From NCBI RefSeq assembly GCF_031769215.1, contig NW_026782072.1, forward strand, positions 1 through 64,000: a DNA stretch of 64,000 bases. Direction: 5' to 3'. Below, piece after piece: positions 1 to 29,164 of the stretch; within the stretch, counting starts at the first letter, position 1; the number at the start of each line of letters is the position of its first letter. The notes under the pieces were generated by a model, which had not been told where the DNA came from, ran no database searches, and worked only from the letters and a program-made list of their open reading frames with translations. The stretch is from Ylistrum balloti (lineage: Eukaryota). The translations under genes were made by a program, and so were the position numbers.

Positions 1-450
1 GCCAGCTCCCAAGGCTTAGGTATGTCGAGATAGAACTTTATTACTTATTTGTAAAAACGAATTCAGCATTTAATTATTTGTCTTCGATATTCTTCTGATA
101 ATAATAACTTAGGTATGTTTCAAATTTAACAACATCCCTTAGCTCGGTATAGTTTGCAAAGGCAGATGATCTTATTTTGAAAACATAAATATGACGGTTC
201 CAAACCAGATTAATCCTTTATATTATCAATCATGAGCTTTATTGCTATCGATGTGTCTCACGTTTGAAAACAAATTATTTGATGAGATTTAATAGCCTTA
301 GCTTATATAAAAAGAACATGTCTACATATCATGTTATGAATTGGATTCTTACTAATGTATTATTGTAATTACATAGAAACGTTGACGGCAGTTTCTTACA
401 ATATAATATACAAATTGTTTAACTTGAGGTATGGTGTATTTACATTTCAG

Positions 451-3400
451 CGGCTAAAGGTACTACCTGTCCTGATGGAATATGCCAACTTGGACGCGAG
501 TGTGAGTGTGGCGACTCTTGTCAGTGCAGTGACGGGATGTCAGTGTCCTCAATGTAAAGCCGGATGCAAAAGTGCAGGTAGAGTGTCTCATTTGTTATGC
601 ACAGTTAGCTTTAATCAGGACAATAAAAAGAAACTCACACCAGGTAGTCTTTAATTACTAGAGACGGAAATTCTTCGATTGGTGAGAATTAGTTACTTGT
701 AACTGCGCATCCGGTAAATGTATGATTTTTTTGTTTTTTTTTTTTTAAATAGACTTATTTATACAGTTATTATCTTGCAAATATGTTAGAGTATCATAAA
801 GATCGAGTGCATATGAGGATAAGAAATTTCTAAATATTTGTAAATGAAATAATGATTTTTTTTTCACAAATAAGACAATTATTTCCCTTTTATGCATTTA
901 TTTCAATCAATTTACTACCGGGTAATCAAAACATCTGCCCCATTTCTAATATAGTATTCAAAGGTGTAACAGGATCATGCTGTTATACGGATGTTATAGT
1001 TTGATTGGTGACCTTTAACGTACTTGCCTGTTGTCTGATTTGTTCGACAATAACTATCTATATAATAACATAATATTTATAATTTGGTCAAATAAGGTAT
1101 TTATCGACCTTTTCGTCCATTAATTATTTTCTATATCTGCGTAATAGCTGTGTCAGACACAAGCTTTATTTGTTCACCTCCATTTTACTTTACTCTGTCT
1201 CCTTGTTTTCTCCCTTCTAATTCAATCATTGTTATCATTCTGAAGATTTTATTGATCAGAGACCGGATAGTTCAATTCTGCATTTGCTACTGTATTCTGC
1301 GTTATGATGGTAAACAATTTTATCAATGCTGTATTTGTACATAAGAATTTACTCTTATCAATGATGAAGCAATTTGATAAACAGACTACATTAACTAACG
1401 TTCCTGCATATTAACTTATTTCTCCTGTAGCCGTGTACTGCGCCAAGTGTCCTGGAGGGAAGTGTGGTTGTACTGGTGCAGACTGTTGTACCAAAAACTG
1501 TAGATGCCCCGGATGTAAGAGCGGATGTGGATGCTTCCGTGAGTTGCTATATGACATTAATATATACAATTTCTTCATTTTAAAAGATAATTATCGGTAG
1601 CATGGTTTATATTTGATAATAGTGTCTGAAGTTAATTCAATAACAATAAATATCTTATCCTTAATATAGATATTACGACAGTGTTCAAATTTCTCTAGTG
1701 TTTTTTCCATGTCAGGATAATGCGAGGATGTTTTATCACATATATACCGCTTTGTATAGATTTTGTAAAATGGAAATTCAGTCATGTTATCAATCACTAT
1801 TTATCAACTAAATTTTTGATAATCTTCTTTTCATATAGCGAAGAAAGGTGGCTTCTGTCCTGGTGGACAGTGTCAGGTCGGACGTGCGTGTGAGTGTGGA
1901 GATTTCTGCACGTGCAGTGACACTTGTGAATGCTCTGTCTGCAAGGCTTGCTGCAAGTGTGGAGGTAATGTTGTTTAATGGTAGTGTACACTTGTATTAA
2001 ATGTTAATGCTATCTTCACATTAGAGGTTTCCGTATCCGTTACACGACTAAGTAGCAGTAGGAACGAAAGGGATGGGACATTTTATAGCATACTCCTTGG
2101 CTGTGTTGCATATCATTTGATACTGCGAGTAGTAACATTGAAAAATTGAGGGGTTTGTCACTTGTTGCATATAAGGATTTCGGGTAGATATATACAAAGA
2201 CTTAGTTGTCAGTAGTGATAGTTTGGATCTCTCCCAACTGTATTCATTATAAAAATACATAAAGTCGACCAAAGTGGTTTGCAAATTAAAATTTCTCTAA
2301 GTCGGTTGGTAAGCTTGGTTGTTCTACAGATAAGATATAGAGGTACTCCTTTGCACATGTCCTCAGGTTGATATTTTAATGGGCGATAAATCTTACCAAC
2401 ATATCCATTCGCTGATTCTATTATTCTTACATCCCAGGTGCCAATGTTGTATGTTCTACGAACTGTCAATCAGGACAATGCTGTGAAACTAGTGCTTGTC
2501 AGGGCAGGTGCAAGTCGGCTACAGGTAAGTACTCTTATTATATTAGACGCCACAATTTGAAAACAACGAGTATATTTCTATTTCAATGCCATGATTTATC
2601 GAAGTATATTCGATCATTAAGATTCCATTCAACGTTCTGCCAACATCTTATTTCCTTCTAACATATTATATTGATTATATCATGTTAAACAAAGACAATA
2701 TGACTAAGAATGGTTACGCTACGAGTAACGAAATTGCTGTCGATTACCAGAATTTTGTTAATATTTACTTCTTTCACAGCTGTGTTCTGTGCCAAATGTC
2801 CCGGGAGGAGGTGTGGTTGTACTGGTGTGGATTGTTGTACGAGCAAGTGTAGATGCCTCGGATGTAAAGTCAACTGTAGATGTTTCTGTAAGTTGTGACA
2901 CCACTTAATTTCAATAATCATTTTGGTGAAAAGACTCTTCATACCCTCCTTTTTTGATAAGTCCATGATATTTTTCTGCAACTACGCCTTAATATCACTG
3001 GATATTTTATCAGACGTATGATCTTTTATTATTGTAATTTTAACTGATTACAGTGTAATAATAAATATTAAATAATATTATTCTAATTCAGCGGCTAAGC
3101 GAGCTACTTGCCAGGATGGAGCTTGCCACAAAGGGCGTGCATGTAGGTGTGGCTGCAAATGCAGTAGCGCATTCCAGTGTCCATCCGGCAAAGCTGGGTG
3201 CAAATGTGCAGGTAACATTGTTATATATTCATTTAGGTGATTTAAAATCGCTATTTGTTCCTTTCTGTTCTATGAAAATATACGTAGTTTTGATGAAACA
3301 CATATAAATCGTTATCAACAACAAAGTGTTCGACATACCTATAAAATGTGCCCCATGTTAATGTGTTTTAATATCCACTCTTTCAGACTGCAATTTCGTG

Positions 3401-5573
3401 TGTTCTGCAGAGTGTGGATCTAGGCAGTGTTGTGGAACAAGTGCATGTAAATGCAACGGCAAATGCGCATGCCAGAAGTGCAGATGCACCTGCGCATCTG
3501 GTAAGAATTTCAAATAGTGCATGTCAATAAAAACAAACAGAGTTTGTGCTGTTAAAACTGGATAAGAGTTGTATTTTTAAGCTTTCCTGAAGATGTTGTG
3601 TACAATATGATTTTAACAGCTGCACAACTACTTTAACTAAACTATTTGGCTCATCATGTCAGTTTTTTCCACAAAAACGGTGTGTGCTTTGTTTGTTTAT
3701 TGTTTTCCCCCCTCTTTTTAATTATAGATATACATCTAAATTTAATAGAAAGATCGCAGTAGTTTCCACGACTTCTATAGCCTGAAGATACACTGAACTG
3801 TAAAGGATGATCCTCGGTATTTGCTTTTTTACTAAGCTGTAAATTAATCACTTAGACTTAATACTTAAACCATATGTCTCATTTTAGGGAATTGCACTTG
3901 TAATAGAGGATGTACTGGACCCTGCACTTGTAAATGTGTTGCAGAGTGTGGATCTAGGCAGTGTTGTGGAACAAGTGCATGTAAATGCAACGGCACGTGC
4001 GCATGCCAGAAGTGCAGATGCAACTGCGCATCTGGTAAGCATTTCAAATATTGCATGTCAATAAAGACAAACAGATTTTGTGGTGTTAAAACTGGATAAG
4101 AGTTGTACTTTTTTTTGCTGAAGATTTTGTGTACAATATGATTTTAACAGCGGCACTACTACTTTAACTAAACTATTTGGCTCATCATGTCAGTTTTTTC
4201 CACAAAAACGGTTTGTGTTTTGTTTGTTTATTGTTTTCCCCCTTCTTTTTAATTATAGATATACATCTAAATTTAATAGAAAGATCGCAGTAGTTTCCAC
4301 GACTTATATCGCCTGAAGATACACTGAACTGTAAATGATGATCCTCGGTATTTGCTTTTTTACTAAGCTGTAAATTAATCACTTAGACATAATACTTAAA
4401 CCATATCTCTCATTCTAGGGAACTGCACTTGCGATAGGGGATGTACTGGACCCTGCACTTGTAGATGTGTTGCAGAGTGTGGATCCAGGCAGTGTTGTGA
4501 AACAAGTGCAAGTACATGCAACGGCAAGTGCGCATGCAACAAGTGCAGAAGCAACTGCGCATCTGGTAAGCATTTCAATTATTGCATGTCCATGAAGACA
4601 AACAGATTTGATGGTGTTAAAACTGGATAGGAGTTGTACTTTTTTGCTGAAGATGTTGTGTACAATATGATTTTAACAGCTACACTACTACTTTAACTAA
4701 ACTATTTGCCTCATCATGTCAGTTTTTTCCAAATAAACGGTTTATGTTTTGTCTGTTTTTTTTTTTGTTTTGTTTTGTTTTCCCCCTTCTTTTTAATTAC
4801 AGATATACGTTTAAATTTAATTAAAAGATCTCAGTAGTTTCCAAGACTTATATCGCCTGAAGATACACTGAACTGTAAATGATGATCCTCGGTATTTGCT
4901 TTTTACTAAGCTGTAAATTAATCACTTAGACATAATACTTTAACCATATCTCTTATTTTAGGGAACTGCACTTGCGATAGGGGATGTACTGGACCCTGCA
5001 CATGTAGATGTGTTGTAGAGTGTGGATCTAGGCTGTGTTGTGGAACAAGTGCATGTAAATGCAACGGCAAGTGCGCATGCAACAAGTGCAGATGCAACTG
5101 CGCATCTGGTAAGCATTTTAATTATTGCATGTCCATGAAGACAAACAGATTTGATGGTGTTAAAACTGGATAGGAGTTGTACTTTTTTTGCTGAAGATGT
5201 TGTGTACAATATGATTTTAACAGCTACACTACTACTAAAACTAAACTATTTGGCTCATCATGTCAGTTTTTCCCAAACGAACGGTTTATGTTTTGTTTGT
5301 CTGTTTTTTGTTTCTCCCCTTCTTTTTAATTATAGACATACATTTAAATTTAATAGAAAGATCGCAGTAGTTTCCACGACTTATATCGCCTGAAGATACA
5401 CTGAACTGTAAATTATGATCCTCGGTATTTGCTTTTATCATAAGTTGTAAATTAATCACTTAGACATAATACTTTAACCATATTCTTTCATTTTAGGGAA
5501 CTGCACTTGCGATAGGGGATGTACTGGACCCTGCACTTGTAGATGTGCTGCAGACTGCACATGTAAGCAGTAA
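451..5573 (+). CDS. MT: Giant multi-module metallothionein MT-A; 5' end lies upstream of the window; first visible exon is frameshifted (gene or pseudogene unresolved)
   Basis: AG/GT-bounded Cys-rich exons, all phase 1-1: 451-577 (type III, 127 nt, +1 G at 534-536), remnant of IV at ~693-713, 1431-1538 (II, AVYCAKCPGGKCGC..), 1839-1964 (III), 2438-2524 (IV, shortened to 87 nt), 2780-2887 (II), 3092-3211 (III), 3387-3500 (IV), 3888-4034, 4419-4565, 4962-5108 (147-nt chimeric V/IV), 5497-5573 (V, GNCTCDRGCTGPCTCRCAADCTCKQ-TAA). Exons from 1431 on splice into one open frame of ~393 codons with 115 Cys. AATAAA near 5788. Confidence 0.85.
3387..5573 (+). repeat. ~535-bp intragenic tandem repeat (exon + intron); four copies of the same intron
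   Basis: Donors at 3500/4034/4565/5108 and acceptors at 3888/4419/4962/5497 give periods of 531-543 bp. Intron text recurs nearly verbatim (e.g. gatcctcggtatttgc, gaagatacactgaactgtaaa). Confidence 0.95.
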
Positions 5574-6010
5574 GTGGTGACGTCATTGGATGGATAGTCC
5601 CACTTTTTCTCAGTTTCTGCGGACATCATTATTGACATTTACGTATTCAACGTGTTATTCAGAGTTTTATTTGTATTTAAACGGAAAGTATATTACCTGG
5701 TGATTTCAATGTAATCGTTCGCTTAACAATCAATTGTATTCCCAATCATTGTCATATCTCGAAGTTGTGTTATTACAGACGAATTTAAATAAAATATGGC
5801 TTCTACTTTTTCCGGTGTTGATAATTTATGTGTATGTTCTATACCCTGATTATCTCCTAATCCTTTTTACAGTAAGATCTATAGTCTTTACATGTTTAGA
5901 AACGATTGAAAATAGGCGCCTTCCTTTTATTTCCATTGTCTACGTACAAACCGACGACGTTTTAAGTAAAGACTTTATAATCAGCCATACCAACATCAAG
6001 AAACTGAGAC

Positions 6011-6205
6011 ATTGACTGGAAACCTGTAGTACCTGGTTATCTTCTCAATGGACATATTGACTGGCAACCTATAGTACCAAGTTATCTTCTCAATGGACAC
6101 ATTGACTAGTAACCTGTAGTACCAGGTTATCTTCTCAATGGACACATTGACTGGTTACCTGTAGTACCAGGCTATTTACTAGACTAGTTACTTGCAGTAC
6201 CAGGG
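6011..6205. repeat. 45-bp minisatellite, ~4 copies
   Basis: Unit attgactggaaacctgtagtacctggttatcttctcaatggacat, decaying at the right end. Confidence 0.85.
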
Positions 6206-6639
6206 TTGATACCCAAGGAAATTTCTATTTGAAAATTAGGAGGTGACTGCTGAAAATCTAATTTGACTGAGAGAAAGATCAAAGTCTAAATGGGGAGGTG
6301 ACTAGCCCAATAATGACATCTAGTTCATCATTTCCATATATATGATAACGTAAGGTGTATACAGAAATTAAGTTACCTAATCTACTTTCACAACACTTGT
6401 TGGGTATAACGGAAATATTAAAACGACTCAATATTTATTCAATATTTACTTGACTGACCTCAATATGAACATCTGAACTGATCTACTATATATGTTATAA
6501 CTGGTCAATAGCAATGAGAAATGCTTTACAATAATTGTTAACTGATTATTCTACCTGATATTCATCTGATTTTTCTTGTCCGCATGGAGTTTTATTGTCT
6601 GAGAAAAACCGAAGTATTAGAAGGAAAATTTACGTGGTC

Positions 6640-6727
6640 CCCACACTTTCCATGTTATGTCGTAGAATCGAACCCTAGACGTTTAGGTAAAATGAGCGTG
6701 TGTTGCCTTTGCACCACCCGATTATCC
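6640..6727 (-). mobile_element. Degenerate tRNA-derived SINE head (Pol III A/B boxes)
   Basis: Minus strand reads ggtggtgcaaaggcaac...gggttcgattctacg: A-box-like GGTGCAAAGG and B-box GGTTCGATTC at tRNA-like spacing, with no full cloverleaf. Confidence 0.4.
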
Positions 6728-8928
6728 AAAGCATTTTTCACATGTTTATTGGAATATTTGAACTGTAGCAATATGAAGAGAGACGCTATTGATACAGTGT
6801 TTCCTATTTCAAATCACATACATGAACTGGTGACATAATAAAAAATACATTCACAATCGTATATACCCATCATATTTATAAATCAATGAACAATGATTGA
6901 ATTTTCACTCTTGTGAATTTTCTATTTACTGATATTAATATCCTTTGTTCACCTAGGGTACATGTCATAGCTGAATGAATATTCAATGTCGTGTTCAAAA
7001 TATCACGATATTTGTGTAAGATGTCGACAACTGACAAATACACAACACCGGTTTCAACAGGTGCAGGCTGTTGAAGATAGTAAGTCTCGCGGTCATTACA
7101 AGGATTGCAATTCCGTTTTTGCTAACTTTGTTCTCTTTTTGAAATGTGACATATTTTGTTTTTCGGGAACACCTGCTCTTATTCTCCATGGTTTCCGTGC
7201 AAAGCTTGTTTTTGTTCAAGTTTTGCCTTAGTGTCATCGAATTTGAGATTGAGTTAAAATGATGTTAACATGTCTGTATTTTCTTTGCTTTTAGCATTAT
7301 TATTTATTTGATGCAGCACTTCTTAATGTCGCTTGACTTTAGAAAAAAATAGTTTATTCTATATTGAAACTGATGCATTCCTCTCTTGACATACATGTAT
7401 AACTGGTTACCTTGGGGCAGGTCATTTTTTATAGTAATATTCTGATCATAAATATATTGGCATCTAAAAAGAAAAAGCACTTGGTTACGTCGGAGTACAG
7501 TGTAAACAACATAATTGATGTTGAGTTTGAAAGTTACTTGTCTTTTTATTTTAAATGCAGGCAAACACATCAGTTATTTCAGTCAGTTGTCTTATTTTCT
7601 GCTTTCTGGCTGTAAGCAAAGGCACTTTGATGAGTATTACAAGATTATAAATGAATATGACGCGTTCTAGGAACTACACGTTTTCTGAATAATTTATACC
7701 TCAAGGGAAGTAACTCTTTACGACACGGTTTTTCCATGTGTGCACGAAAGCTCAGATTTTTTTTAAACTTAGTTACTCTGAAGTAGAAATATGGAAGAAT
7801 GGCCTTCCAAATAAACTAAATGTTGTAACCTTTTTGTTGTTCAAGAAAGAATTACAAGCATATATTTTGCTTTAGGTATGGAAAACGCCTCGTAGTCAAT
7901 ATTTGTACTCATTTTATCAGGTTTGTCTGTGTGTATTTTACAGAGTGCATGAAATGCAACTAAATGTTTCCTGAAACGTATACACATTTATTAGTTTCAA
8001 AATCTTGTAATTAGATTTTATGTATTCTTAAGTTTAATTATTTTATTAGTATATGGTTTTTATTAACATTGATTTATTTAATTTAAGGGTAATGTCATAG
8101 CGAACTATTCATATCATATAAATGGGTTAGGTATTATACTCCTAACAGAGAAGGTGTGTGTGCATATGTATGTGTTAACCATGATATCCAGCTGAGATAT
8201 ATAAATTGCCAACATTGTATCTAAAGGAAGCTGACTGATTGTTAGTATGTATCAACGTGGTGCAAGCAACTGAAATATGATTAAAAAACGATGATAATGT
8301 TGTTTATTTACAATGCCAAACATGGGTTATATATGTATATACAAGACTCGCTCGCAAACACATAATCACTCACTCCTATATCAAGAAATACGAATGTTAA
8401 TGTAGCTAAGCATAGATCCTGAATAATATTCTAATACACCTTAACTCATTAACAAGGATGTAAACACTCCACTCAAATATGTTTTAAATAGGTATTAATA
8501 ATGTATGGCTCGAGTTTAATTAGGAGATTACATTGAATTTCACACCTCATGGTTTCAATACATTTTCCACCCGCGCGCGTACCCACTGTGTTCAACACTA
8601 TGACAAAAGAGACGTTAAACGCACGATATAGACTACATAATTGCATATTGAACAATCAAGTATGCATTTATCGCCCTTATACAATAGTAGAACATACATA
8701 CTTTATGCATAAAAATTAGCATAAAAACGACATGAATAGAACTCATTTCACCTAAGTAATACACAATGATCTAGGTTGTTTGACCCGATGGTAACACTGT
8801 ACAATGCAATATCAACTAAAATAGAAAGTTAACTTACCACAGTCTGTCTTTTGTGCCTGTTTCACATGCTGTAAAATAGCGATAAATTCTTATTGGATGC
8901 ACGAGGCAAATAACAACAGCTCACCAAG

Positions 8929-9401
8929 TGCACGCCTGCCCGTGACGCATTTCCACCGATGCCTAATTATTAAGGTTACTTACCTCGGCAGTGATAAAAA
9001 CAAAATACACAATCAATTCAATATACATGTACTATCAACAATAAACGTGCTTGCGTGGTAGTATATCTGTGTATAACTTATCCTTTAAGGGGACCATTTG
9101 AAAGATTAGTATAGTTGCTACCCTCGAAAAAATTATTATCATGTATGTGCATAAATTGTGTAGACAATGTGGATGTATTTTACATTGTAGACGTAAATAG
9201 TATTGTGTCAATTATCAGAAAGATAAACAGAAAAATATGGCATACCTTTGATTGACCTTCACATAGTAATACTTTGTTTGAACGACCTCTGAAATGACGG
9301 TTTTGGTCTAAATTAGGTAGAATACCAACAGGAGAGTCGTCATGTTATTTTCTTTGAGATTTCGTATCTCAAGTGATAACATCCAGACCATAGGATTGAT
9401 G

Positions 9402-9448
<47 letters not shown>

Positions 9449-9675
9449 AGTCACGCCTAGTAATTGGAGGCTGAATATATACGTCACTTAGAAATAAAGA
9501 TATGATACATACATAATCAACTAAGCATCGTGTGCAAAATTCCCTTCTTACATTCTTTTGATTTGCACACGATACGGTTTTGCATACGGCTGCCTTCACA
9601 TGTATTTTGTACGATTCACGTATACCTCCTTTAATGCACACGATTTTGGTTTGCTCACGCAATGTCCCTATAACT
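8929..9675 (+). promoter_or_regulatory. MT-B promoter: metal-response elements and a TATA-like box
   Basis: MRE core TGCRCNC at 8929-8935 (TGCACGC), 9530-9536 (minus strand), 9564-9570 and 9635-9641 (TGCACAC). cctataac at ~9667, ~85 bp upstream of ATGTCCGAAG. Confidence 0.7.
9404..9445. repeat. (TA)n microsatellite, ~21 units
   Basis: Direct reading. Confidence 0.98.
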
Positions 9676-9755
9676 AGCGTCATATTTTTTTATCAATAAT
9701 GAGCTGAAGAGACACATTCAGTCGTTTTCAGAGCGTTGAAAACTTTCCTCATGAG

Positions 9756-11470
9756 ATGTCCGAAGGCATATATTATTCGTTTATTATAAATCAGTTAAAT
9801 AAATATATCATTTCATTTATCTTTTTATCTATTTTTGTTTAATTTTTTTATTATTTATTTAAATAAATTAGACAATTATCGGTGATTAGTATTTCTATGT
9901 TCACATATGGCCTTGGATTTGGTGTAGAATTTTCCTTAAATTTCAGTGACTTCTAAACTGCCTGTCTGCATCAGAGACATCATACAAGTAATGAACACTT
10001 TGGTTGCAAACAGTTTAGATCAATAAACTGAACTGGATTTTTGGTAAAATGACCATTGCAAATAACTAATATTTTTAGTTAAATGTAGTCGGTATTACCG
10101 TGTTAAGAGTACCCGATTGGCCATTACAGAAATGAATTAAATAAAGACCTGGGTTCTTTCCTTATATCATAAACGTATGTAATATTTTATTATTATTATC
10201 TTAATAATCATAATTATCATAATCAAAGTCTAGCATTATGTATTAATCTGCCTCTTCCTTTTGATTATTGGTCTTATTCCTCTATCATATTTTAATTTAG
10301 CTTCCAGAAGTATGTACTCCTTCTGTTCCAAAATGTACATTAATGGATATTTATAAAATTAATTTGTTTAAAACGGCTATTTTTTCCGTTATCCTGCACT
10401 TCACTTCACTTAAAATGACAGAGCAATCCGTTTAATTAATTTGTTCTAAAATTACTTTTTTCTTGAGTGGGTGGTAATTATAAATATGGATCCATTACAC
10501 AAATTATATCAGGTACGGAAACAGAATTTAGAGGAGAAAATATTTACAAATTTAGGTTTTTATTTCGTATTCAGTCGTGTTCTTTGCCAAGTGTCCCGCT
10601 GGAAGGTGTGACTGTACTGGTGCGGGCTGCTGCACCAACAACTGTAGATGTCCCGGTTGTAAGGTCGACTGTGGATGTTTCTGTAAGTTGGAAACAAAAT
10701 TCAAAAATTCAAAATTAAAAACAAATTTTCTCTTGTATTTGCTAAAGAACCAGTCTGATACTTTGGAAAGTATACTTAAACTTTAATGACAAGACGTTGA
10801 TGGCTGTGATCTTACTTGATTCTGAAGATGAAAGCATTACACCATCATGTCAATAACACTGGACAACAAATTATATTGAAACCAATTAAATAAATTACTA
10901 TGTAGCACATGTATATTTATAGTATAAATTGTATCTTTGGTTAAGTCGCGAGGGCTGCTACCTGTCCTGACGGAATCTGTCATATGGGAGTTGCTTGTAT
11001 ATTAGTATCAATAATCCGCTTTTGAGTTAGTGACAAACCTTGTCGATACACCATTATTTAACCTGTTATATATCGATACCAATAGATCAAAAATATTTTA
11101 AATGTTCATTTTATTTTAACGAACAGGTAGAAGTATAATGATGGTGTACTTTTGATAATAATGTACATTTCTTCACGTCTTTAGTACATCGCTGATTAAA
11201 ATCGTTGTGTATCAAAGAAAAAGATATATTTCAAAATGAAAACCCATATAAAAATAACTAATCTTGTTCGAGTATTGACTAAATTTACCAATATAAAAGC
11301 TACTTCTCATGTTTTCTTTGTCAGGGGCTAACTTAGTGTGTTCCGCGGACTGCCAGTCTGGGAGGTGTTGCGGTACTAACGCCTGCCATTGCAGTGGTTG
11401 GTGTGGATGTCCAACGTGCATAGGCAGCTAGAACTTGTAGGTGTTCTGCAGCTGTTCGTGTAAGTAGTAA
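9756..11470 (+). pseudogene. MT: Metallothionein pseudogene MT-B
   Basis: Exon I ATGTCCGAAG 9756-9765 is followed by GCATAT instead of GTAAGT. Exon II 10575-10682 (first Cys->Phe). Exon III is truncated (10946-~10998, ..TCPDGICHMGVAC, no donor). Exon IV starts at 11325 and hits TAG at 11429-11431, then fuses to a frameshifted remnant of the exon V end (acttgtaggtgttctgcag-ctgttcgtgtaagtagtaa, 11433-11470). Confidence 0.85.
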
Positions 11471-14400
11471 GCGGCTACGTAATCGAAAATCCAATTCCGA
11501 TCTTGGATGGAATGTCCTACACTGCTCTCTAACTGCCTGTTGACAAATTGATAGATACAATTAAATTATTTTGTTGATTCAAAGAGCTTTATATATTTTT
11601 CAAGCTGTCTTAAAACTTTATTAACTTTATTTTATTAACAACTAGATCTACATTTATATTATAAATAATTTCTGTTCTCTTATTCCTAACATATTTTCAG
11701 GATGTAAAAGTAATAAATATGAAAAAAAGCATAAAATTTTGAGTTTTGCTGTATACTTATGAACCATGGATTTGATAACAAATAGTATGCTAAAACAACA
11801 AAGAAAATACGCACATTTCAACAGAGCCTTAAGTCGTGAAATTATGACAAAATATGACCAAAAGAAAGATTTACACGCAGATCGAAGAAGTGAACTTTTA
11901 GCGGGGCAAAGACTAATGATGTTTGTTAACGAATAGCTCAATCTCAATACCGAATCATAATCAAAAACATGCAATATCTGGCATTGAGTGCCAAGCTAGG
12001 GCTTTGCAAAAGATATGTGTCAATCATATCATATACCAAACCTCCATTAATATTAGGTGGAATGAAGGCTTAGAAGTCAATAAAAATTACAGAAAGCGTT
12101 TTTTTCGAGGTGCGAGAAGGACACAATGGAGTGCAATAAGATCTTAAATCTTGGAAATTATACTTTTTACGATCAAGACAATTGATAGTTGAACTTTGAT
12201 AGTATAGTGGTTTTTTTCCATGTTCAATAGTTTACAAAACTTTGTGGTACAAACATATTCAGTTTCGGTAAAACATAGTTCTAGCAATTGATACACATTA
12301 ATTGTGTGTCCCCAATGTTCGACCCGCTGCCAAAAAGTGTTTATTACTCATGAAGATATTACAACCTTTGTTTGCACTGTGACATTAGTAATAAAAGACC
12401 TTTGCATGTGATGCAAATTGATTCCAAAGCATCCATGATCATTTATTTTCATCGAATAAATTACGTAGAAAATAATAACCAAATTATCCTTTTCAATGTA
12501 GTATCTCTCAGCATGATTGATATAAATTATAAATACACTTACATATGTAAAACAGAAACAAGAGAACAGAATTTTAATTCAAAGCACATATCGATGGACA
12601 GGGTAAAAATAAGAACAACAACAAAAATACACGAAGACGCTATAAAAGGAACCATTCTATGTTCAAATATCATTAAAAGGACAAACAAATGAATCCCACA
12701 TTTTAATGAAATTCAGAGTTAGATACAGTGGATCCAAATAATGAACAAAACAGCATTATAGGGTTGTTTCATGCTTCTTTGACTTTTGAGTTATGCTAAG
12801 GGTCCAAGTTTGGAAGTCTAGATGGCGACTGAGAAAAATCCAAAGTGACCTAAAGTAGTCAAAATGTCGACGGGGAGGTACTCTAGCCTCATAAGACAAT
12901 ATATTTCGTAATTCTCATTTATCTAATTTTAGAAGAACATCAAATACATGTGTATATTCTGAACAGTGCCACAAATCGATTGAATTAAAACTGGGCATAC
13001 AGTTGAGGACTAATAGTCCTCTAGCAATGTCTACCACATGCAATCTCGAAGATTGTACCAAAGACACAAAAATTAATGGCACATTTTAATAAAATTTAGA
13101 GTTAGATGCTGTAGAGTTGCATATGGTCTGTAAAACCTCAAACGTAGGACGTTCCAATATTCAGTTAGTGTAAAGATTCTAATTGAACCACAATATTAAT
13201 TTGATTTTCATCAAATTGCCTTATTGGCAAGCCGGGTTTCAATTTGATTAACCATCTACTGCAATACAGTACATCAAAGCGAAACGATACAATATACTGT
13301 ACATGTGGATACTTGTAATTATGCTGTTAAAATAATCCGTAGTTACATATCAGCTACATCGAAGTAGGTACTGAAGAAAATCAAAATTTGTCGAAAGAAA
13401 TCTTAAGATTTAGATGGAGAGGTGCACTAACTCCATAATTCAATAACTTTGATAATATTCTCATCTCGAATGATTTGATAGGAACGTCAAGCACGCGTGC
13501 ATATTCTGACCGTATTACTCTTCATATCAAAACATGTCATACAAGTTACAGTGGGGTGTTCTCTGAATGTAAACATTTTTATACAAGAATGTGTTGCTTT
13601 ATGATACAATGGCAAGTCAATTATATACTGTTTCATATAGGATGTATTTCTTCACCTGGATTGTTACCTGATATTTACCGGTTCCTCACAAAACATTTCT
13701 TCATATTTGATGTATTACAATTTTAAAAAAACATTGAAATGTTGTTATCAAAGCAATTTAGATGTATGAAAAATGTTGATATAAAAATGTGAATAATTAA
13801 ATTTGACAATTCAGCACTAAATTATATTTGAAAACATCGAACTATTATATTGGATGATACCGTTATATACAACACACTATAAATTTAATTGTTTTTTTTA
13901 TTATTATTATTATTTAAAATAAGTCATTGAATCAAAGAAAAAAGCGCATAATAATGTTGTAGGCTACAAGCACGCATACCGGTAATAATACTGAACGTCA
14001 AGACTTGTACGTATTGTAATTATATCCAACAAAAAGAGGATGACTTACATATTTAATCATAATTCAAAATTTAGGAGTTACTGTTAGGTTTTTAAATAAT
14101 TTACCATGCTACATGGTTGATCGAGAACTTGACATAAGCAATTCCACTTTTAAATGATACAAAAAACAGGAAAATTGAATAATTGATTAAGATTCTAAAG
14201 AAAGACGGCATACTGTTATAATTTATAATGAAGTATTTATATATGATTAAATAAAATTTTAGTGTTCAAAAAATTTCGGTTCCATAGAAATATTTTTAAA
14301 TAAAATTGTCTGGTATATGCAGGATTTTCAATTTTGAGAAAGTACAATAGATAAAACTTGGTAAGCAGATATTACATTTCGATTTTACATAAATTGAATA

Positions 14401-15394
14401 GCGATTTTTTTTAATTTTTCGATATCAGTTTGCTTTAGATTACATGAAAACGCATTGTGATTTTAAAAAGATACTTTGATACTATTAAATAATCACACAA
14501 GAAACTTACTTTGTATTTAGAGCAAGTAACCATTAATTCATAGTGGAAACTGGCAAACGGAATGATGCAGGATACCAAAATAAAATTGTCTTCATTTTTA
14601 ATCAAATGACATATATGTCCAAATATATCAAGTTGAAAGCTAATGTCAGTTATCAGCTGAACATAAGAAAATTATGAAAATACCACTAGATATGTCCAAA
14701 TGCAATTAAGTTGATAAAACTCAGGAATTTCAACCATAACAAAACCTTAAAATAATGATAGAACATGAGATGTGAAATGATGCATTTGATTTCTCTTTAT
14801 TTCATATGGCGAAAAAGAACAAAAGTATTCATTTTTTAACATATATCCGAGATATTTAGGTAACACCAATAAAAAAGTATCTCAGGTTGTGAACGTTACG
14901 GTATTATGTGATTAGTCCTCCAAAAATAATTATCACTTTCAAGAACACATTATTGATGGACATCTCAACAGTAAGAGAATGTATCAATAGATTATCAAAA
15001 CATCATCTGCATGGAAAGAGAAGTCATTTCACTCTCTCTGTCCTTATTCTTAGATATAATAGTAACGGTTCATAGTTGTAACAAGCAACAGTAATATTGA
15101 AACATAGTATTACATTTCCAAAATACACAATATAAGGAAATTATAACTTTATATCACAACATATACTAGATAATACGAAAATAGAGATCCGCTTTGTTGT
15201 ATGATTAAAGTTGAACATTAATTTTAAAACATCAGAGTCGGTAGTTGAAGACAAAAAAAATATCTTTATTGATATCTGGCGAGATTGCATAAGCCTTACA
15301 AAGTTACAGCTGATGATGAAAAAGTATATGACATTTATGTAGAATGTCATTACCGGGAATATACACACACTATATTTTAACAGTACATATATGT

Positions 15395-16215
15395 TGCACA
15401 CGAACATGTAATGAGTGCACACGATGATACACAAGCATCACTGCACACGGTTGATTTTGTATTACGTATAAACAAAATACATATCTATTTTTAAAAAAAA
15501 ACAATCGTGCTATCTCCTATTGTTTCTATCTCTGAAATAGGTTGTAACAGACAAAGATTGTATAATTATCCATCAGGAAGTATTGACATGACAGGGGATT
15601 ACATCTTTTGGGTGTGTTTACATATTCGGAAAACATATGCGTCTTAGCTTACGTCATTTATACCGACATAATGAAATGTTGCATTCAGTCTAATCATGTC
15701 GAGTTACATATCAGTCACTCCAACAAAGTTGACAATAAACACGTTGTAACATTAAGTATGTGGTGTTACAGGCAAACGTACAAATCTCTAAATGATCATC
15801 CCGAAAAAAGTCAGTATGATACTTCCTTATATATCTACTGTAGTTCACGTCGTCGCTTAATAATTTGATAATCTGTAACACTCCTGGTTCATTTAATATC
15901 TACTATATTTTTTTTATATTCTATTGTAAGTGGTTGACTTGATAATGACTACCTTTTATATATCTATGATCGAGCTCTAAAATTAGTAATCACATATTTT
16001 ACTTGGCAACGAATGTAATTAACGTAAGTATAACACTCCTATTGCAGTTATAATAATTTCCTTGTCATCGCTGCACACCACCCTGGTTTTGCTAAGGGCT
16101 ATCTTCACATAAATATTTTGCGCGTGGTTCTACCTATTCATGTCAATTCACACGATACTTAGTTTGCACACGCATCGTCCCATTTTTGCACACGCATCGT
16201 CCCATTTCCTATAAG
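15395..16215 (+). promoter_or_regulatory. MT-C promoter: distal and proximal MRE clusters plus TATA box
   Basis: TGCACAC at 15395, 15416, 15442 (distal) and 16072, 16165, 16187 (proximal). TATAAG at 16210-16215. Confidence 0.85.
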
Positions 16216-16336
16216 TATTGTCACATTTTGCAATTGGACAATACCCTGACAATTGATCTATCCAGTAGCGCTGAGAAGATTTTCCGGTTCTGAAGGTACT
16301 CTATAGAAGATCTGAAGGTACTCTATCGAAGCCGAA

Positions 16337-18444
16337 ATGTCTGAAGGTAAGTAGAGTGTTTATGTCATGATTACGAACGGTTTCATGTTAGTGTTAAAGT
16401 AAATAACATATTAAATTGGTAGCTCTTACCATTGTTTTGGAAAGTACAAAACGTAAGAATATAAGTACGTTTGATAATATAATTTCCAAAAATCGTATTT
16501 CCTCGTATTGAGACCAAAACTTGTAGTTGAAATTCATCGGTTGTTCGCTTAAATCTAGGAGTTGAAATTTTGTGATACCTAATTTTTGTAAGTACTTCTC
16601 CCGTTTGATTTTTTCACACATTTTTGACATTGATAACCGCATGGTAGTGGTAGGTAGCTATTTTTACTTTGCCTGTCTGCAATTATCATTGTAGATAAAC
16701 AGGTAGTTGATTGCTGATGGGCCATCCGTCTCAGATATAAACCCCAATTTTCACCGAAAACTGATTTTATTTCCGTTTTCAGCATTCCACTATATTTGGT
16801 GATCTTTTTTCAGAATGCTTTCGAACAATAAGACATCGACTTTTCTTTTACGTCTTATAAGAACCCTCGAAGAGTACTGAACGATCGATATGATCATACG
16901 GTGCGGTGAAGATGTTTCTACATCTTAATGAAATGTGGAGTATAAAATATTCAGTAAGGGTAGTTAAACATATTAGTAGTATCTGACGACATGGGGATTT
17001 CTGTTCAATAGTCTATTGAAAAAGAAACATTTTCCTACCCAACAGTTGCGTTCTGTGCCAAGTGTCCTGGTGGACAGTGCGGCTGCACAGGTGCTGGATG
17101 CTGTACTACGAGCTGTAGATGCCCCGGATGTAAAGTAAACTGTGGATGTTTCTGTAAGTTAAAAGTGAATAGTCTTTTATAATAGGACAGTGGAGGTTTC
17201 ATGAAATACCGACGCTAAGAATAACAGGAACTGCAATCCTACAAAACATTTAAAATTCTAATTGTGCTTTTCTGTGTTACTTGCTTGTTGTATTTGTAAC
17301 AACGTTGGGGCGATATAGATCTGTACTATGGATACTGTTCAGTTAGATCACTTTGTGATATCATGGTGACAAAAAAGTATCTGTCACTGTCCAAGGCGCT
17401 GGGAACAAGCTGAAGGATACATATATCACGTTAATACTGAAGAGGACTTAAACTGATTTACAATACTTTATGTTTCTAATTTAGCGGCAAAGGCCTCAGT
17501 TTGTCCCGACGGAATCTGTCAGATGGGAGTTGATTGTGAATGTGGCTGCAAGTGCAGCAGCGCATGTACGTGTCCCAACTGCAAGGCCGGATGCAAATGT
17601 GCAGGTAAGTACATTTAACTTCCTTCGCATATAATCATAATCATAGTTGTCAGAGTTACCTTTCTCGCTTTATATTGTCAGTTATACTCCGTTATACCAT
17701 AAAGGATTGGAAGGAATCCATCAGATTTTATCTGGTTAGTCTAGAAAACATTTTGTTATAAAAGTGAAGCTTTTATGTGTAGAGTTTATTTTTGTATATT
17801 TTACTGACAACTTGATTTCATTTCAATTCATTTCACAAATAAATAAGGAACATTATACATGTACAAATAGTAATAAATGTATTGCCTATAATGTCTCAAC
17901 TTTTACTTGGTGGTACTATTTCTTGTTTGTCAGGTGCCAACTTCGTGTGTACCGCGGACTGCCAGTCTGGGATGTGTTGCGGTACCAGGGCCTGTCAGTG
18001 TAGCGGCAAGTGCGCATGTCCAAAATGCAAGTGCAACTGTGCCTCTGGTAAGTACCGGAGTTCTTAGGAACAGGACCTGTCATTGGCTGTTACATAATAC
18101 CCTATTTATTTAAGGCAAATAGCATGAAGAGTACAAATTCCTGAGAACTTCAGTTGGTACAATGATCCAAGAGTCATGTAATATATCTGGATATATTACT
18201 CCGTTGTTTAAAGTTGTATATCTATAGAAGTTACAGTTAAACACAAAAAAAAATTTCAGTATTCAAAAGTGCTTAAGTTATATCTTTACAGGATAAATTT
18301 GAAAAACATGTGAAATTTTCTCGTCAGTTTTTGATATCGTTATTTATCAATCAATCATACCTTACAGGGGCATGTGCGTGCGGTGTGGGCTGTACCGGAC
18401 CTAAAACATGCAGGTGTGGTGCTGGATGTAGGTGTAAGCTGTGA
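16337..18444 (+). CDS. MT: Metallothionein MT-C, 142 aa, 40 Cys, 5 exons
   Basis: Exons 16337-16346, 17046-17153, 17485-17604, 17934-18047, 18368-18444 (429 nt, open, TGA). Protein: MSEVAFCAKCPGGQCGCTGAGCCTTSCRCPGCKVNCGCFSAKASVCPDGICQMGVDCECGCKCSSACTCPNCKAGCKCAGANFVCTADCQSGMCCGTRACQCSGKCACPKCKCNCASGACACGVGCTGPKTCRCGAGCRCKL. AATAAA at 18693. Confidence 0.95.
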
Positions 18445-21400
18445 AAAATCACATCTTTGGAGAATATGACACCATACCGGATGGACTGACCAATTCTTTA
18501 TCAACTCTTTACGGATATATTGATTAACATTTAAATTTGAAACTCCTGCTTGAATCCCTCGTTTTGTGATTGTCAATGACTTTATTTTGGTTATTTTACA
18601 CACAATTATCTTATTCTAATATAAAATGATTGTTGACAATTGTCATCTTGTTCTCTATCCTTTGGAAATCTTTGAAATGTAAATCTAATAACAATAAATA
18701 TTGGTATCTGCTTCAATGAGAGTTTTGTAGATTTATTTATGGACATGATGTTATTTTTGTCTTTAACCTCTGAATCCTGCAGGACTAATAGATTGGTCGA
18801 AAGAAATGTTTAGATTTAGATGGCGAGGTGCACTAACTCCATAATTCAATAACTTTGATAATATTCATATCTCGCATGGTTTGATAGGAATGTCAAACAC
18901 GCGTGCATATTCTGACCGTACTACTCTTCATATCAAAACATGTCATACAAGTTACAGTTGGGTGTTCTCTGAATGTCAATAAAAGAAGAATGTGTTGTTT
19001 TATGATACAATGGCAAGTCAATTCACCTGGATTGTTACCTGATATTTACCCGTTCCTCACAAAACATTTTTTTATATTTGATGTATGACAATTTTTAAAA
19101 AACATTGAAATGTTGTTATTAAAGTAATTTAGATGTATGAAAAATGTTATTATAAAAATTGGAATAAAGAACTTTGACAGTTCAGCACTAAATTATATTC
19201 GAAAAACAATTTACTATTAAATTGGATGATACAGTAATATGCAACACAAAGAAAGACTATAAACTGATGTTTTTTCTCTAGAATAAGGGAACAAAAGTAA
19301 TTGAAACAAAAAAAAGCGCATAATAATGTTGTTGGTTACAAGCACGCATACCGGTAATAATACTGAACGTCAAGACTTGTACGTATTGTAATTATATCCA
19401 ACAAAAAGAGGATGACTTATATATCTAATTATAATTCAAAATTTAGGAGTTACTGTTAGGTTTTAAAATAATATACCACGCTCCATGGTTTATCGAGAAC
19501 ACGACATAAGCAATTCCACTTTTAAATGATACAAAAACAAAAAACAGGAAAATTGAATAATTGGTGAAGATTCTAAAGAAAGACGCCGCACAGTTATAAT
19601 GCATAATTAATTATTTATATATATCATTAAATAAAATTTAGTAGTCCCATATTTTGGTTTCATACAAAATACTTTATAAAAATATATATTAAATAGTTTT
19701 TAAAAAGATATATTAAATATTTTTTTAAATAATAAGTGAATTTGGTCTGATGTATGTAGGATTCTCAATTTTGAGAAAATATCGTACTTCGGTGATTAGA
19801 ACTTGCTAAGCAGATTTCAGTTTTACAAATATAGAATAGCGATATTTTTCTATATCACTTTGCTATATTCTATATTAAAACCTATTATAATTTCTTAAAA
19901 TTACTATTAAATGATCACACAAAAAACTTATTTTGTACTTAGTAACCATTAATTCATAGTGGAAACTGGCAAACGGAATGATGCAGGATACCAAAATAAA
20001 ATTGTCCTCATTTTTATTATAATGCCATAGATGTCCCAAATATATCAAGCTGAAAGCTAATGTCAGTTATCAGCTGAACATAAGAAAATTATCAAAATAC
20101 CATTAAATATCTCCAAATGCAATTAAGTTGATAAAACTCAGGAATCTCAGTCATAATAGAACCTTAAAATAATTCAGCAACGTATGATATGATAGAACAT
20201 GGGATGTGAAATGATGCATTAGGTTCCTCTATATTTTTCATGGTGAAAGAGAACAATTTTTTTTTACATATATCCGAGATATTTAGGTAAGGTTATTGAA
20301 CAATTATTATAATGGAAATCAGCATTGGAAATTTATTTATAAACAATTATTTGAAATCTGATAAAATCAATCAATCAAATAATATTTACGAAGTCAAAAT
20401 TTGATTTTAAGTTTTAAAGGTAAACTTAACTGCTGGAATGGAAACTAATTAAGGGAAAAGATTATAATCCCTGTCAAAACTAATTGCCCTGTAGGGAAAT
20501 TCCAAATGCTGGCTTTCAGAGATACTCCTCAAACCTGGGGAACCACTAGGAGAGTCTCCGACATGAAGTCTCAAAAATTTGGAACCACCTTATATAACTA
20601 CTTAACCTATACTGAGAGCTTGAGATGTCTTATCTGTTGAAGGCCGAAGGCGGAGTGGATGTGAAATAAATACGTATATGAATAAAAAAGAACAAAGCAT
20701 GTCCTATGGAAATAAAACAGAGCGTTTTAAAGTGTCAGAACATTACACTATATTGCGAGTGTTGTCCTGTTATCATCTATCTTATATTTCAAATACAGAT
20801 CTACAACAATCCATTTTTCTTGTTTCACCAATAGCTGAAATTGCATCAATAAATAACTGTTAACAAGACGAAATAAAATACACAAAGCACAGTTCAAAGC
20901 ATGGAATGATGGGTGATTTCTGTTCTTAAGTGTGTATATAGAATATACTTTATATAATTACTAATTCACTGTATAATCATCCCGTGTTCGTGATATAACA
21001 GTCTTGCCAACATGAATCCCCATAACAATACAATGACATTGCAATTATGTACCTTTAACCATATTAAAGGATGCTCGTTTGCAATAATCAAGGGAAGTGA
21101 TTAATGCTCTTGGCAACTGATGTGCTAGTGATCAAAACATTGCGTGCCAATATTACTGTACTTAGGTCTCTGGTTCGGTGACTATGCTCATATGAATTTG
21201 GCTGTGAAAAAAACTGTCAAAATCTGCTAATCGAGTCCTTAATTTCTCAGGTACCTATTTTAATGTTGTATTACCATATGACACTTGGATAAAATAAATT
21301 TAAAATACCTATAAATGTCAACAGGTTGTGAACATTACGGTATCATGTGATAAGTCCTCCAAAAATAACGATCACTTTCAAGAACACATTATTGATGGAC

Positions 21401-21845
21401 ATCTCAACAGTAAGAGAATGTATCAATAGATTATCAAAATATCATCTGCATGGAAAGAGAAGTCATTTCACTCTCTCTGTCCTTATTCTTAGATATAATA
21501 GTAATGGTTAATAGTTGTAACAAGCAACAGTAATATTGAAACATAGTATAACATTTCTAAAACACACAATATAAGGAAATTATAACTTCATACCACAACA
21601 TATACTAGATAATACGAAAATAGAGATCGTCAGACCCGCTTTGTTGTATGATAAACGGTGAACATTAATTTTAAAAATTCACTGTCGGTAGTTGAAGACA
21701 AAAACATACATTTATTGATATATGGCAGTTGTTTCGGCAAGATTGTATAAGCCTTGAAACTAATGATGAAAAAAGCAAATGACATTTATGTAGAATGTCT
21801 TTATCGGGATTATACACACACTATAGTTTAACAGTACATATATGT

Positions 21846-22644
21846 TGCACACGAACATGTAATGAGTGCACACGATGATACACAAGCATCACTGCACACG
21901 GTTGATTTTGTATTACGTATTAACAAAGTACATATCTATTTTTTAACAAAAACAATCGTGCTATATCCTATTGTTTCTATCTCTAAAGTATGTTGTTACA
22001 GACAAAGATGGTATAATTTTCCTCCATCAGGAAGTATTAACATGACAGGGTTTTATCTTTTGGGTGTGTTTACATATTCGGAAAAAATATGCGTCTTAGA
22101 TCACGTCATTTATACCGATATAATGAAATGCTGCATTCAGTCTAATCATGTCGAGTTACATATCAGTCACTCCAACAAAGTTGACAATAAACACGTTGTA
22201 ACATTAAGTCTGTGGTGTTACAGGCAAACGTACAAATCTCTAAATGATCATCCCGAGAAAAGTCAATATGATACTTCCTTATACATCTATTGTAGTTCAC
22301 GCCGCCGCTTAATAATTTGATAATCTGTAATATTCCTGATTCATTTAAAATCTACTTTATTTTCTATATTCTATTGTAAGTGGTTGACTTGATAATGACT
22401 ACCTTGTATATATCTATGATCGAGCTCTAAAATGTAGTAATCACATATTTTACTTGGCAATGCATGTAATTAACGTAAGCATATCACTCCGAGTGCAGTT
22501 CCTATAATTTCCTTGTCATCGTTGCACACCACCCTGGTTTTGCTATGGGCTATCTTCACATAAATATTTTGCGCGTGGGTCTACCCATTCATGTCGATTC
22601 ACACGATACTTAGTTTGCACACGTATCGTCCTATTTCCTATAAG
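21846..22644 (+). promoter_or_regulatory. MT-D promoter: MRE clusters plus TATA box
   Basis: TGCACAC at 21846, 21867, 21893, 22523, 22616. Minus-strand TGCACTC at 22491-22497. TATAAG at 22639-22644. Confidence 0.85.
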
Positions 22645-22765
22645 TATTGTCACATTTTGCAATTGGACAATACCCTGACAATTGATCTATCCAGTAGTGC
22701 TGAGAAGATTTTCTGGTTCTGAAGGTACTCTATAGAAGGTCTGAAGGTACTCTATCGAAGCCGAA

Positions 22766-27800: not shown

Positions 27801-28244
27801 TCTCAACAGTAAGAGAATGTATCAATAGATTATCAAAACATCATCTGCATGGAAAGAGAAGTCATTTCACTCTCTCTGTCCTTATTCTTAGATATAATAG
27901 TAATGGTTAATAGTTGTAACAAGCAACAGTAATATTGAAACATAGTATAACATTTCTAAAACACACAATATAAGGAAATTATAACTTCATACCACAACAT
28001 ATACTAGATAATACGAAAATAGAGATCGTCAGACCCGCTTTGTTGTATGATAAAAGGTGAACATTAATTTTAAAAATTCACTGTCGGTAGTTGAAGACAA
28101 AAACATACATTTATTGATATATGGCAGTTGTTTCGGCAAGATTGTATAAGCCTTGAAACTAATGATGAAAAAAGCAAATGACATTTATGTAGAATGTCTT
28201 TATCGGGATTATACACACACTATAGTTTAACAGTACATATATGT

Positions 28245-29043
28245 TGCACACGAACATGTAATGAGTGCACACGATGATACACAAGCATCACTGCACACGG
28301 TTGATTTTGTATTACGTATTAACAAAGTACATATCTATTTTTTAACAAAAACAATCGTGCTATATCCTATTGTTTCTATCTCTAAAGTATGTTGTTACAG
28401 ACAAAGATGGTATAATTTTCCTCCATCAGGAAGTATTAACATGACAGGGTTTTATCTTTTGGGTGTGTTTACATATTCGGAAAAAATATGCGTCTTAGAT
28501 CACGTCATTTATACCGATATAATGAAATGCTGCATTCAGTCTAATCATGTCGAGTTACATATCAGTCACTCCAACAAAGTTGACAATAAACACGTTGTAA
28601 CATTAAGTCTGTGGTGTTACAGGCAAACGTACAAATCTCTAAATGATCATCCCGAGAAAAGTCAATATGATACTTCCTTATACATCTATTGTAGTTCACG
28701 CCGCCGCTTAATAATTTAATAATCTGTAACATTCCTGATTCATTTAAAATCTACTTTATTTTTTATATTCTATTGTAAGTGGTTGACTTGATGATGACTA
28801 CTTTGTATATATCTATGATCGAGCTCTAAAATGTAGTAATCACATATTTTACTTGGCAATGCATGTAATTAACGTAAGCATAACACTCCGAGTGCAGTTC
28901 TTATAATTTCCTTGTCATCGTTGCACACCACCCTGGTTTTGCTAAGGGCTATCTTCACATAAATATTTTGCGCGTGGGTCTACCCATTCATGTCGATTCA
29001 CACGATACTTAGTTTGCACACGTATCGTCCTATTTCCTATAAG
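28245..29043 (+). promoter_or_regulatory. MT-E promoter: MRE clusters plus TATA box
   Basis: TGCACAC at 28245, 28266, 28292, 28922, 29015. Minus-strand TGCACTC at 28890-28896. TATAAG at 29038-29043. Confidence 0.85.
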
Positions 29044-29164
29044 TATTGTCACATTTTGCAATTGGACAATACCCTGACAATTGATCTATCCAGTAGTGCT
29101 GAGAAGATTTTCTGGTTCTGAAGGTACTCTATAGAAGGTCTGAAGGTACTCTATCGAAACCGAA

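Follow-up and report, generated by a model that had tools for sequence, protein, structure and literature searches.

A multi-domain metallothionein gene of exceptional predicted size, apparently built by two tiers of exon duplication, in the scallop Ylistrum balloti

Introduction

Does the cysteine-rich locus at the very start of a contig of the scallop Ylistrum balloti hold a single, exceptionally long metallothionein (MT) gene, and, if it does, is that gene alive? The locus lies at positions 451-5573 on the forward strand of contig JAUZWB010001322.1 (assembly GCA_031769215.1), the first 64,000 nucleotides (nt) of which form the window analyzed here. Window position 1 is the physical contig start and window coordinates are record coordinates (the fetched paralog locus was identical, letter for letter, to window 19165-41243). 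A sequence-only reading had proposed that these exons make up a giant MT that arose by two nested rounds of exon duplication, and that the product may be an undescribed metal-binding protein of very high capacity or a recently decaying one. Our analysis makes it probable, as far as the sequence allows a judgment, that the locus is a functional multi-domain MT of roughly the observed architecture. The visible part would amount to at least the 3' four-fifths of a real gene of the scallop "beta2-like…beta1" type, and the real choice among the readings lies between a live giant MT and a recent pseudogene.

Exons, reading frame and limits of the gene

The exon order III*-IVremnant-II-III-IVshort-II-III-IV-(V/IV)x3-V that had been read from the letters was re-derived exon by exon with canonical splice sites. 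Ten exons at 1431-5573 (forward strand), with AG acceptors behind pyrimidine tracts and GT donors, splice to a frame of 393 codons plus the stop TAA, with 115 cysteines (Cys; 29.3%) and no Met, which is exactly the count given earlier. The 1,181 nt of coding sequence run without a premature stop or a frameshift, and every splice site is retained. After exon III*, the internal exons all have lengths that are multiples of 3 and are of phase 1-1. The visible product has 392 amino acids (aa) and a computed apoprotein mass of 39.9 kDa, and it includes 40 CxC and 8 CC motifs, 9 F/W/Y/H residues, and 29 Lys against 19 Asn. The features of the gene are as follows:

451-577, +, exon III* of a degenerate upstream block, 127 nt, both splice sites intact
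693-713, +, exon IV remnant (3' end, …TGTAACTGCGCATCCG, then gtaaat), 21 nt (a multiple of 3), flanked by AG and GTAAAT
1431-1538, +, exon II_a, 108 nt, 11 Cys
1839-1964, +, exon III_a, 126 nt, 12 Cys
2438-2524, +, exon IVshort_a, 87 nt, 6 Cys, in frame, 27 nt below a full exon IV
2780-2887, +, exon II_b, 108 nt, 11 Cys
3092-3211, +, exon III_b, 120 nt, 9 Cys, F and G in place of two conserved Cys
3387-3500, +, exon IV_b, 114 nt, 12 Cys, its last 94 nt opening repeat unit 1
3888-4034, +, hybrid exon V/IV_1, 147 nt, 49 aa, 16 Cys
4419-4565, +, hybrid exon V/IV_2, 147 nt, 14 Cys, two Cys-to-Ser changes and one Gly-to-Glu change
4962-5108, +, hybrid exon V/IV_3, 147 nt, 16 Cys
5497-5573, +, terminal exon V, 77 nt, 8 Cys, ending ...CRCAADCTCKQ and TAA, with the full mollusc MT C-terminal signature
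5788-5793, +, AATAAA polyadenylation signal, 215 nt 3' of the stop

The spacers between blocks measure 204-500 nt and are intron-like. A search of 1-1431 for an ATG micro-exon with a phase-1 donor found none, a scan of the window placed no cluster of the metal-response element (MRE) core TGCRCNC within 1-5573, and terminal exon V is the only stop exon in that interval; on all three points, as in all of its figures, the sequence-only reading had been right. Across the window, MRE cores occur at twice the shuffled frequency, their clusters sitting upstream of four neighbouring MT genes. No other sizeable open reading frame overlaps the locus on either strand, and no Rfam family was found in 1-12000. 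About 440 bp 3' of the stop, at 6009-6175, a 45-bp unit is repeated in tandem (3.7 copies, 89% matching).

Metallothionein family membership

The motifs of the product and its clear paralogy with a 142-aa gene of the same contig support the view that the giant gene is a mollusc MT, as had been supposed. The C-terminal signature C-x-C-x3-C-T-G-x3-C-x-C-x3-C-x-C-K, which we take to represent the Binz-Kagi family 2 pattern, was matched in a regular-expression search by CTCDRGCTGPCTCRCAADCTCK, residues 370-391 of the spliced product, and is also present in an ortholog from Mizuhopecten yessoensis (see below) and in neighbour gene C. When the 142-aa paralog was compared with solved structures, it matched the MT of Littorina littorea (5MN3, E=2.6e-5) and a "Cadmium-metallothionein" (6QK5, E=3.5e-5), presumably the Cd-MT of Helix pomatia. 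A protein homology search with a single open frame from the locus led to the 142-aa Y. balloti paralog; across the homology searches, made with queries shorter than the spliced product, only this paralog and an M. yessoensis model named "Tenascin-X" came up.

Exons II, III and IV each encode a 9-Cys core of the C-C-[CxC]3-C type with a trailing CxC (in exon IV, as read from the translations, C-x3-C-x4-CC-x4-CxC-x3-CxC-x2-C and then CxC; exons II and III are analogous), and a beta1 domain spans the IV/V junction. The pattern definitions of beta2-like and beta1 domains were taken from the literature, where the beta1 motif, with 9 Cys, reads [CxC]x3-6[CxC]x3Cx5[CxC]x3-5[CxC] (PMC7826182). The giant product matches it in full once, where the last hybrid exon joins exon V; of the three earlier IV-to-V-type junctions, two show a match without the last CxC, and the third is disrupted by a Cys-to-Ser change in V/IV_2. 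The product thus has the layout of the scallop AirMT1 type (several 9-Cys beta2-like domains, then one beta1), and its composition is that of mollusc MTs (15-30% Cys in CxC/CC, few aromatics).

An old tier: repetition of the II-III-IV block

Through its match to the 142-aa Y. balloti paralog, the 200-aa "Tenascin-X" protein led to an ortholog of the giant gene in M. yessoensis (locus L002:1-4421, contig NEDP02005552.1), which also lies at a contig end. Its eight phase-1 exons with canonical splice sites run II_0, II_1, III_1, IV_1, II_2, III_2, IV_2, V and encode at least 285 aa with 86 Cys, counted from II_0; the deposited model is wrong, beginning at a Met inside IV_1 and running through the last donor. 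The upstream part of this gene likewise shows no hidden first exon or MRE cluster, and no exon III or IV stands at the place corresponding to III* and the exon IV stump of Y. balloti. The terminal exon ends ...CKCAPDCTCKQ* and is 76% identical to its Ylistrum counterpart over 109 nt, beyond the stop. Both scallop genes share the ending ...DCTCKQ*, whereas the 142-aa neighbours end ...GAGCRCKL*. A normal 144-aa MT gene follows further along the M. yessoensis locus (L002:11915-14421).

In blastn comparisons between the two species, exons and a few flanking bases align at 67-84% identity and introns never do (III* and M. yessoensis III_1 are 72.6% identical over 146 nt). Codon analysis between the species gave a nonsynonymous divergence (dN) of 0.17-0.40 and a synonymous divergence (dS) from 0.66 to more than 2 where computable, being otherwise saturated. 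The ratio dN/dS (omega) was mostly 0.1-0.3 (range 0.06-0.54, the highest value for II_a against M. yessoensis II_1), and dN to the outgroup gene C showed no consistent excess on the Ylistrum branch when Ylistrum exons were set against their Mizuhopecten counterparts. Taken together, the exon-only alignment, the low omega and the lack of a branch-specific excess indicate that purifying selection acted on the old exons, III* included, through most of their history.

The block repetition itself (within Y. balloti, a repeat search found II_b and II_a, which lie 1349 bp apart, to be 76% identical over 131 nt) is probably old and would predate the split of Ylistrum and Mizuhopecten, because the architecture is common to both, because a 2-codon "GD[SF]" (6-nt) insertion is shared by III_a, III* and M. 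yessoensis III_1 (it is not found in III_b, M. yessoensis III_2 or the 142-aa genes), and on grounds of parsimony. Parallel duplication or gene conversion is also conceivable, and the strict orthology of the block repeats is less certain. Exon trees, built to establish that the a blocks correspond to block 1 and the b blocks to block 2, did not do so: the trees of exons II, III and IV were poorly resolved, with weak support for IVshort_a + M. yessoensis IV_1 (76/84) and a weak clustering of the exon II copies by species.

A young tier: hybrid exons in a tandem array

The second tier had been described as a newer unit of about 535 bp, and alignment as well as a separate repeat search bore this out:

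3407-5549, +, four tandem units of 534, 531, 543 and 535 bp

Identity among the units is 89.4-94.7% and follows a gradient along the array. Each unit takes in 94 nt from the end of exon IV, then the IV-V intron, then 53 nt from the beginning of exon V (Tandem Repeats Finder, run with a maximum period of 500, did not report the array). At the point of fusion exon V reads TGTGCTGCAGAC and exon IV TGTTCTGCAGAG, in equal codon phase; the hybrid junctions read TGTGTTGCAGAG and, in V/IV_3, TGTGTTGTAGAG. The product of this tier is three in-frame hybrid exons of 49 aa each with 14-16 Cys. All four exon V heads of the giant gene (3888-5573) read CTGPCTC and so have one Cys more than the TGPKT of the 142-aa paralogs or the TGPST of M. 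yessoensis; this extra Cys may make up for the CxC that the hybrid modules have lost.

In the DNA of the M. yessoensis locus no V/IV hybrid exon was present, and by this absence and by the 5-11% difference among its copies the tier is judged to be young. The two-tier history proposed earlier is therefore upheld in both of its parts, the older with the reserve expressed above. Among the units there are 19 exonic changes, six of them synonymous (neutral expectation 24%), no exonic indel as compared with at least six intronic ones, and no stop, and all eight splice sites are kept. Exon divergence is below intron divergence in two of the six unit pairs, dN/dS is about 0.2 in the V-head parts, and both Cys losses fall in V/IV_2. 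Selection on the young units is not demonstrable from these figures; the pattern fits a redundant array under relaxed constraint and also a gene that recently ceased to matter.

Neighbouring metallothionein genes

Downstream of the giant gene lie genes C (16337-18444), D (22766-24842) and E (29165-31243). All three consist of a 10-nt ATG exon followed by exons II-V, and their products measure 142 aa and contain 40 Cys; the giant product is about three times as large, as had been stated. The product of gene E is the Y. balloti protein annotated as "keratin-associated protein 5-4-like". The three genes sit in tandem units (15336-34500) of 6429 and 6399 bp (6.4 kb); the C and D units are 96% identical throughout, and the match between D and E, at 95%, is limited to the first 3.4 kb. 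An MRE cluster and a short ATG first exon precede each of the neighbours B, C, D and E. Triplets of MRE cores at 15395-15448, 21846-21899 and 28245-28298, about 600-700 bp upstream of the proximal MRE clusters of C, D and E, may be distal metal-response elements.

Gene B (9530-11470, +) is a decayed MT paralog: its MRE cluster (9530-9641) is followed by an ATG exon at 9756 with a GC, not GT, donor, and by an intact exon II (10575-10682), but exon III is truncated near 10945-11000, and exon IV (from 11325) contains a premature stop and runs into what is left of an exon V tail ending ...CK*. The assembly annotation contains a 256-aa product that begins before 19165 and ends at the stop of gene D (16337-24842; L001:1-5678). 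Its length (771 nt) equals exactly exons I-IV of gene C plus exons II-V of gene D. The model reads through from one 142-aa MT gene into its tandem neighbour and fuses the two, and the fusion mimics a II-III-IV-II-III-IV-V gene. Elsewhere in the window, a minisatellite of ~54-bp units at 43600-44850 (reverse strand) carries a long open frame repeating ...CSTYSDTTGCFSPCDMIG....

A live gene or a recent pseudogene

Several observations weigh against a functional gene. Its exon I, promoter and MRE cluster are not in view; because window position 1 is the contig start, any upstream continuation falls outside the contig, and a live 5' end is assumed. The first visible exon, III*, is frameshifted (a G run near 531-536 holds a surplus base, and the frame meets a stop at 555-557) and is followed by the 21-nt exon IV stump. 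Further downstream, 27 nt are lost in IVshort_a, two Cys in III_b and two more in V/IV_2. In most pairs of young units exon and intron divergence are equal (0.054 vs 0.052; 0.102 vs 0.100; 0.061 vs 0.066), the IV tails have a dN/dS of about 1, and the two Cys-destroying changes are not significantly fewer than the approximately five expected (binomial p ~0.08, computed by hand). A decayed paralog, gene B (9.5-11.5 kb), lies 4 kb downstream, and Pfam matched no piece of the giant product. The last result, as well as the lack of an MT match in the PDB for a single hybrid exon and the 0 hits of a protein search with the 48-aa hybrid exon, we attribute to short, Cys-biased queries. Apart from these database blanks, the same observations are what would be expected if the gene had been functional for most of its history, had lost its 5' part or its expression in Ylistrum and were now drifting, with the hybrid array as a neutral repeat expansion. 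We regard this as unlikely, though as the most serious of the competing accounts, because the 1,181 nt of ten exons stayed unbroken while the introns of the units gained at least six indels and 5-11% substitutions, omega is about 0.2 in the V heads, the old exons show no excess of dN on the Ylistrum branch, and a multi-block ortholog is conserved in M. yessoensis. The lone frameshift, moreover, falls in a homopolymer about 530 nt from the contig end, where errors are common, and the extra base is possibly a consensus error; it may also be of no consequence, since all exons are symmetrical and III* could be skipped without harm. On the question "high capacity or decaying" the earlier reading was thus half borne out on each side, purifying selection on the old exons and the unbroken frame speaking for the one, the near-neutral young units and the frameshifted III* for the other.

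A live gene might instead be spliced alternatively into shorter MT isoforms from subsets of its cassettes, the full 393-codon product being rare or never made. The symmetrical exons and their uniform phase would permit this, and the 256-aa annotation across C and D shows that cassette-style joins have at least been modelled in the cluster; yet acceptors and donors look equally good throughout, and unused exons would not remain open and Cys-rich across the Ylistrum-Mizuhopecten divergence, for which reasons we hold this account to be improbable. Still far less credible is the view that the locus is a row of short, independent MT genes, or that it is an artefact of the assembly, for instance through the false expansion of a repeat. 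Separate genes are excluded in practice because the interval 1-5573 has no Met codon, no ATG first exon and no promoter-like MRE cluster, a single stop exon and intron-sized spacers between its blocks. For an artefact one could point to the position of the giant locus and of its M. yessoensis ortholog at contig ends (such arrays evidently break assemblies), but the units differ by 5-11% and have private indels, far above what haplotype or mis-assembly duplicates would show, and this origin is unlikely. The functional multi-domain MT is thus the reading followed below.

Proposed origin and product

The gene is built from phase 1-1 cassettes, each with a beta-type core of about nine Cys and a trailing CxC, and because every cassette has this phase, copying, fusion and skipping of exons could occur without a break of the frame. 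In a first step, the II-III-IV block would have been repeated to give a II-III-IV-II-III-IV-V gene as in M. yessoensis (the pattern is observed, its age is probable). In a second step, confined to the Ylistrum lineage, a tandem duplication with breakpoints at the TGTnCTGCAGA shared by exons IV and V would have copied a 534-bp segment (IV tail, intron and V head) and so created an in-frame hybrid exon minus the stop; unequal crossing-over between the units may then have raised the number of hybrids to three. It is the junction sequence from which we infer this mechanism of a single duplication followed by unequal crossing-over. The start of the gene presumably lies off the contig end, with an MRE promoter, a 10-nt ATG exon and, probably, one more exon II, and III* would be either skipped or affected by an end-of-contig sequence error.

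The predicted product, of at least 392 aa and about 40 kDa as apoprotein, would hold cadmium (Cd) and Zn, or Cu, in thiolate clusters. MTs are disordered in the apo form, and a beta-type MT domain binds three divalent ions with nine Cys (the three-domain Littorina MT binds nine Cd). At this ratio, which is also that of BscMT1 (see below), the 115 visible Cys would hold on the order of 38 Cd/Zn ions. An excess of Lys over Asn has been linked to a preference for Cd over Cu in gastropod MTs (PMC8476144), and the corresponding excess in the giant product is a weak pointer to Cd.

Comparison with known metallothioneins

Multi-domain MTs made by domain repetition are an established kind in molluscs, and in this respect the architecture is less new than had been suggested. 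Among the MTs of the scallop Argopecten irradians, AirMT1 consists of three beta2-like domains and one beta1, and AirMT2 of two beta2-like domains and one beta1 (PMC7826182). Compared by description, family and building blocks are alike (9-Cys beta2-like domains, beta3-patterned, ending in beta1), and the neighbours C, D and E with their 142 aa and 40 Cys fit the description of the four-domain AirMT1. In contrast to the AirMTs with up to four domains, the giant gene comprises no fewer than ten coding cassettes, with 115 Cys in all, together with repeated II-III-IV blocks and a beta1-head/beta2-like-tail hybrid, a module that is not described for them. The M. yessoensis ortholog agrees with the Ylistrum gene in its terminal exon, 3' flank, II-III-IV-II-III-IV-V order, phase 1 and run-off at a contig end, and has an extra exon II (II_0) where Ylistrum has III* and the exon IV stump. 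In the literature searched, the coverage of which was incomplete, we found no description of a scallop gene of such a kind.

Among gastropods, Alinda biplicata has a 9md-MT of 287 aa and a 10md-MT of 319 aa, with 85 Cys in AbiMT4 (PMC7084494, PMC7826182); the 10md-MT has been called the longest mollusc MT so far described (PMC7084494), and 319 aa and 85 Cys were the upper limits among the roughly 270 mollusc MTs of one survey (PMC7826182). As in the giant gene, beta-type domains are tandemly repeated before one beta1, in an animal that handles much cadmium. However, the Alinda genes are intronless and repeat beta3, whereas the giant gene keeps an exon and introns for each module, its repeat unit is a three-exon block with a later hybrid exon, and its visible part is larger. 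The MT-II forms of Crassostrea virginica, described as alpha-n forms that arose by exon duplication (cited in PMC7826182), are likewise bivalve MTs enlarged by intragenic duplication of domain exons, but they repeat the alpha domain a few times and have lost beta1. The beta3 arrays of caenogastropods are further multi-domain MTs of molluscs (PMC7826182, PMC7084494).

In size the closest class is that of the tunicate giants. OdiMT2 of Oikopleura dioica, with 399 aa, is the longest MT cited from any organism (PMC7084494), and BscMT1 of Botryllus schlosseri has 365 aa and 105 Cys and binds about 36 divalent ions (PMC8476144). They too consist of many tandem Cys modules, each autonomous in metal binding, and BscMT1, with about one divalent ion per three Cys, provides the experimental yardstick for the capacity estimated above. 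They belong, however, to an unrelated lineage, with unrelated 12-Cys modules and without the mollusc beta1 signature. If expressed whole, the Ylistrum protein would be the largest mollusc MT on record even in its visible part of 392 aa and 115 Cys.

Scallops accumulate unusually high amounts of Cd, and the protein carrier in their digestive gland is debated (PMC12357810). In M. yessoensis the Cd-binding fraction of the digestive gland, at 35-66 kDa, has recently been assigned to a meprin-like protein (PMC12357810). Set against this fraction, the mass of the giant MT, about 40 kDa for the apoprotein and, with Cd bound, about 44 kDa, invites a speculation: scallops might share a conserved giant MT, mis-modelled as "Tenascin-X" (and its paralog as "keratin-associated protein"), that with its 5' exons would exceed 400 aa and 120 Cys in Ylistrum, would be the largest MT of any organism and would make up a major part of the high-molecular-weight Cd fraction. 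As a whole we consider this quite doubtful. An identification of the 44-kDa Cd-binding band of M. yessoensis with the giant MT would be speculation only, as a meprin-like protein was identified there and the ortholog, as seen, is smaller (at least 285 aa). A mis-annotated MT of 30-40 kDa would escape proteomics that depends on databases, and corrected gene models make the question of the Cd carrier testable.

What is new with respect to the published MTs is the size, the intragenic repetition of a three-exon block, seen in two scallop genera, and the hybrid-exon module. To this extent the novelty claimed by the sequence-only reading stands, and the locus appears to record a path by which an MT can grow: repetition of a block, fusion of the head of the stop exon with the tail of the previous exon, by which the stop is removed, and expansion of the resulting array.

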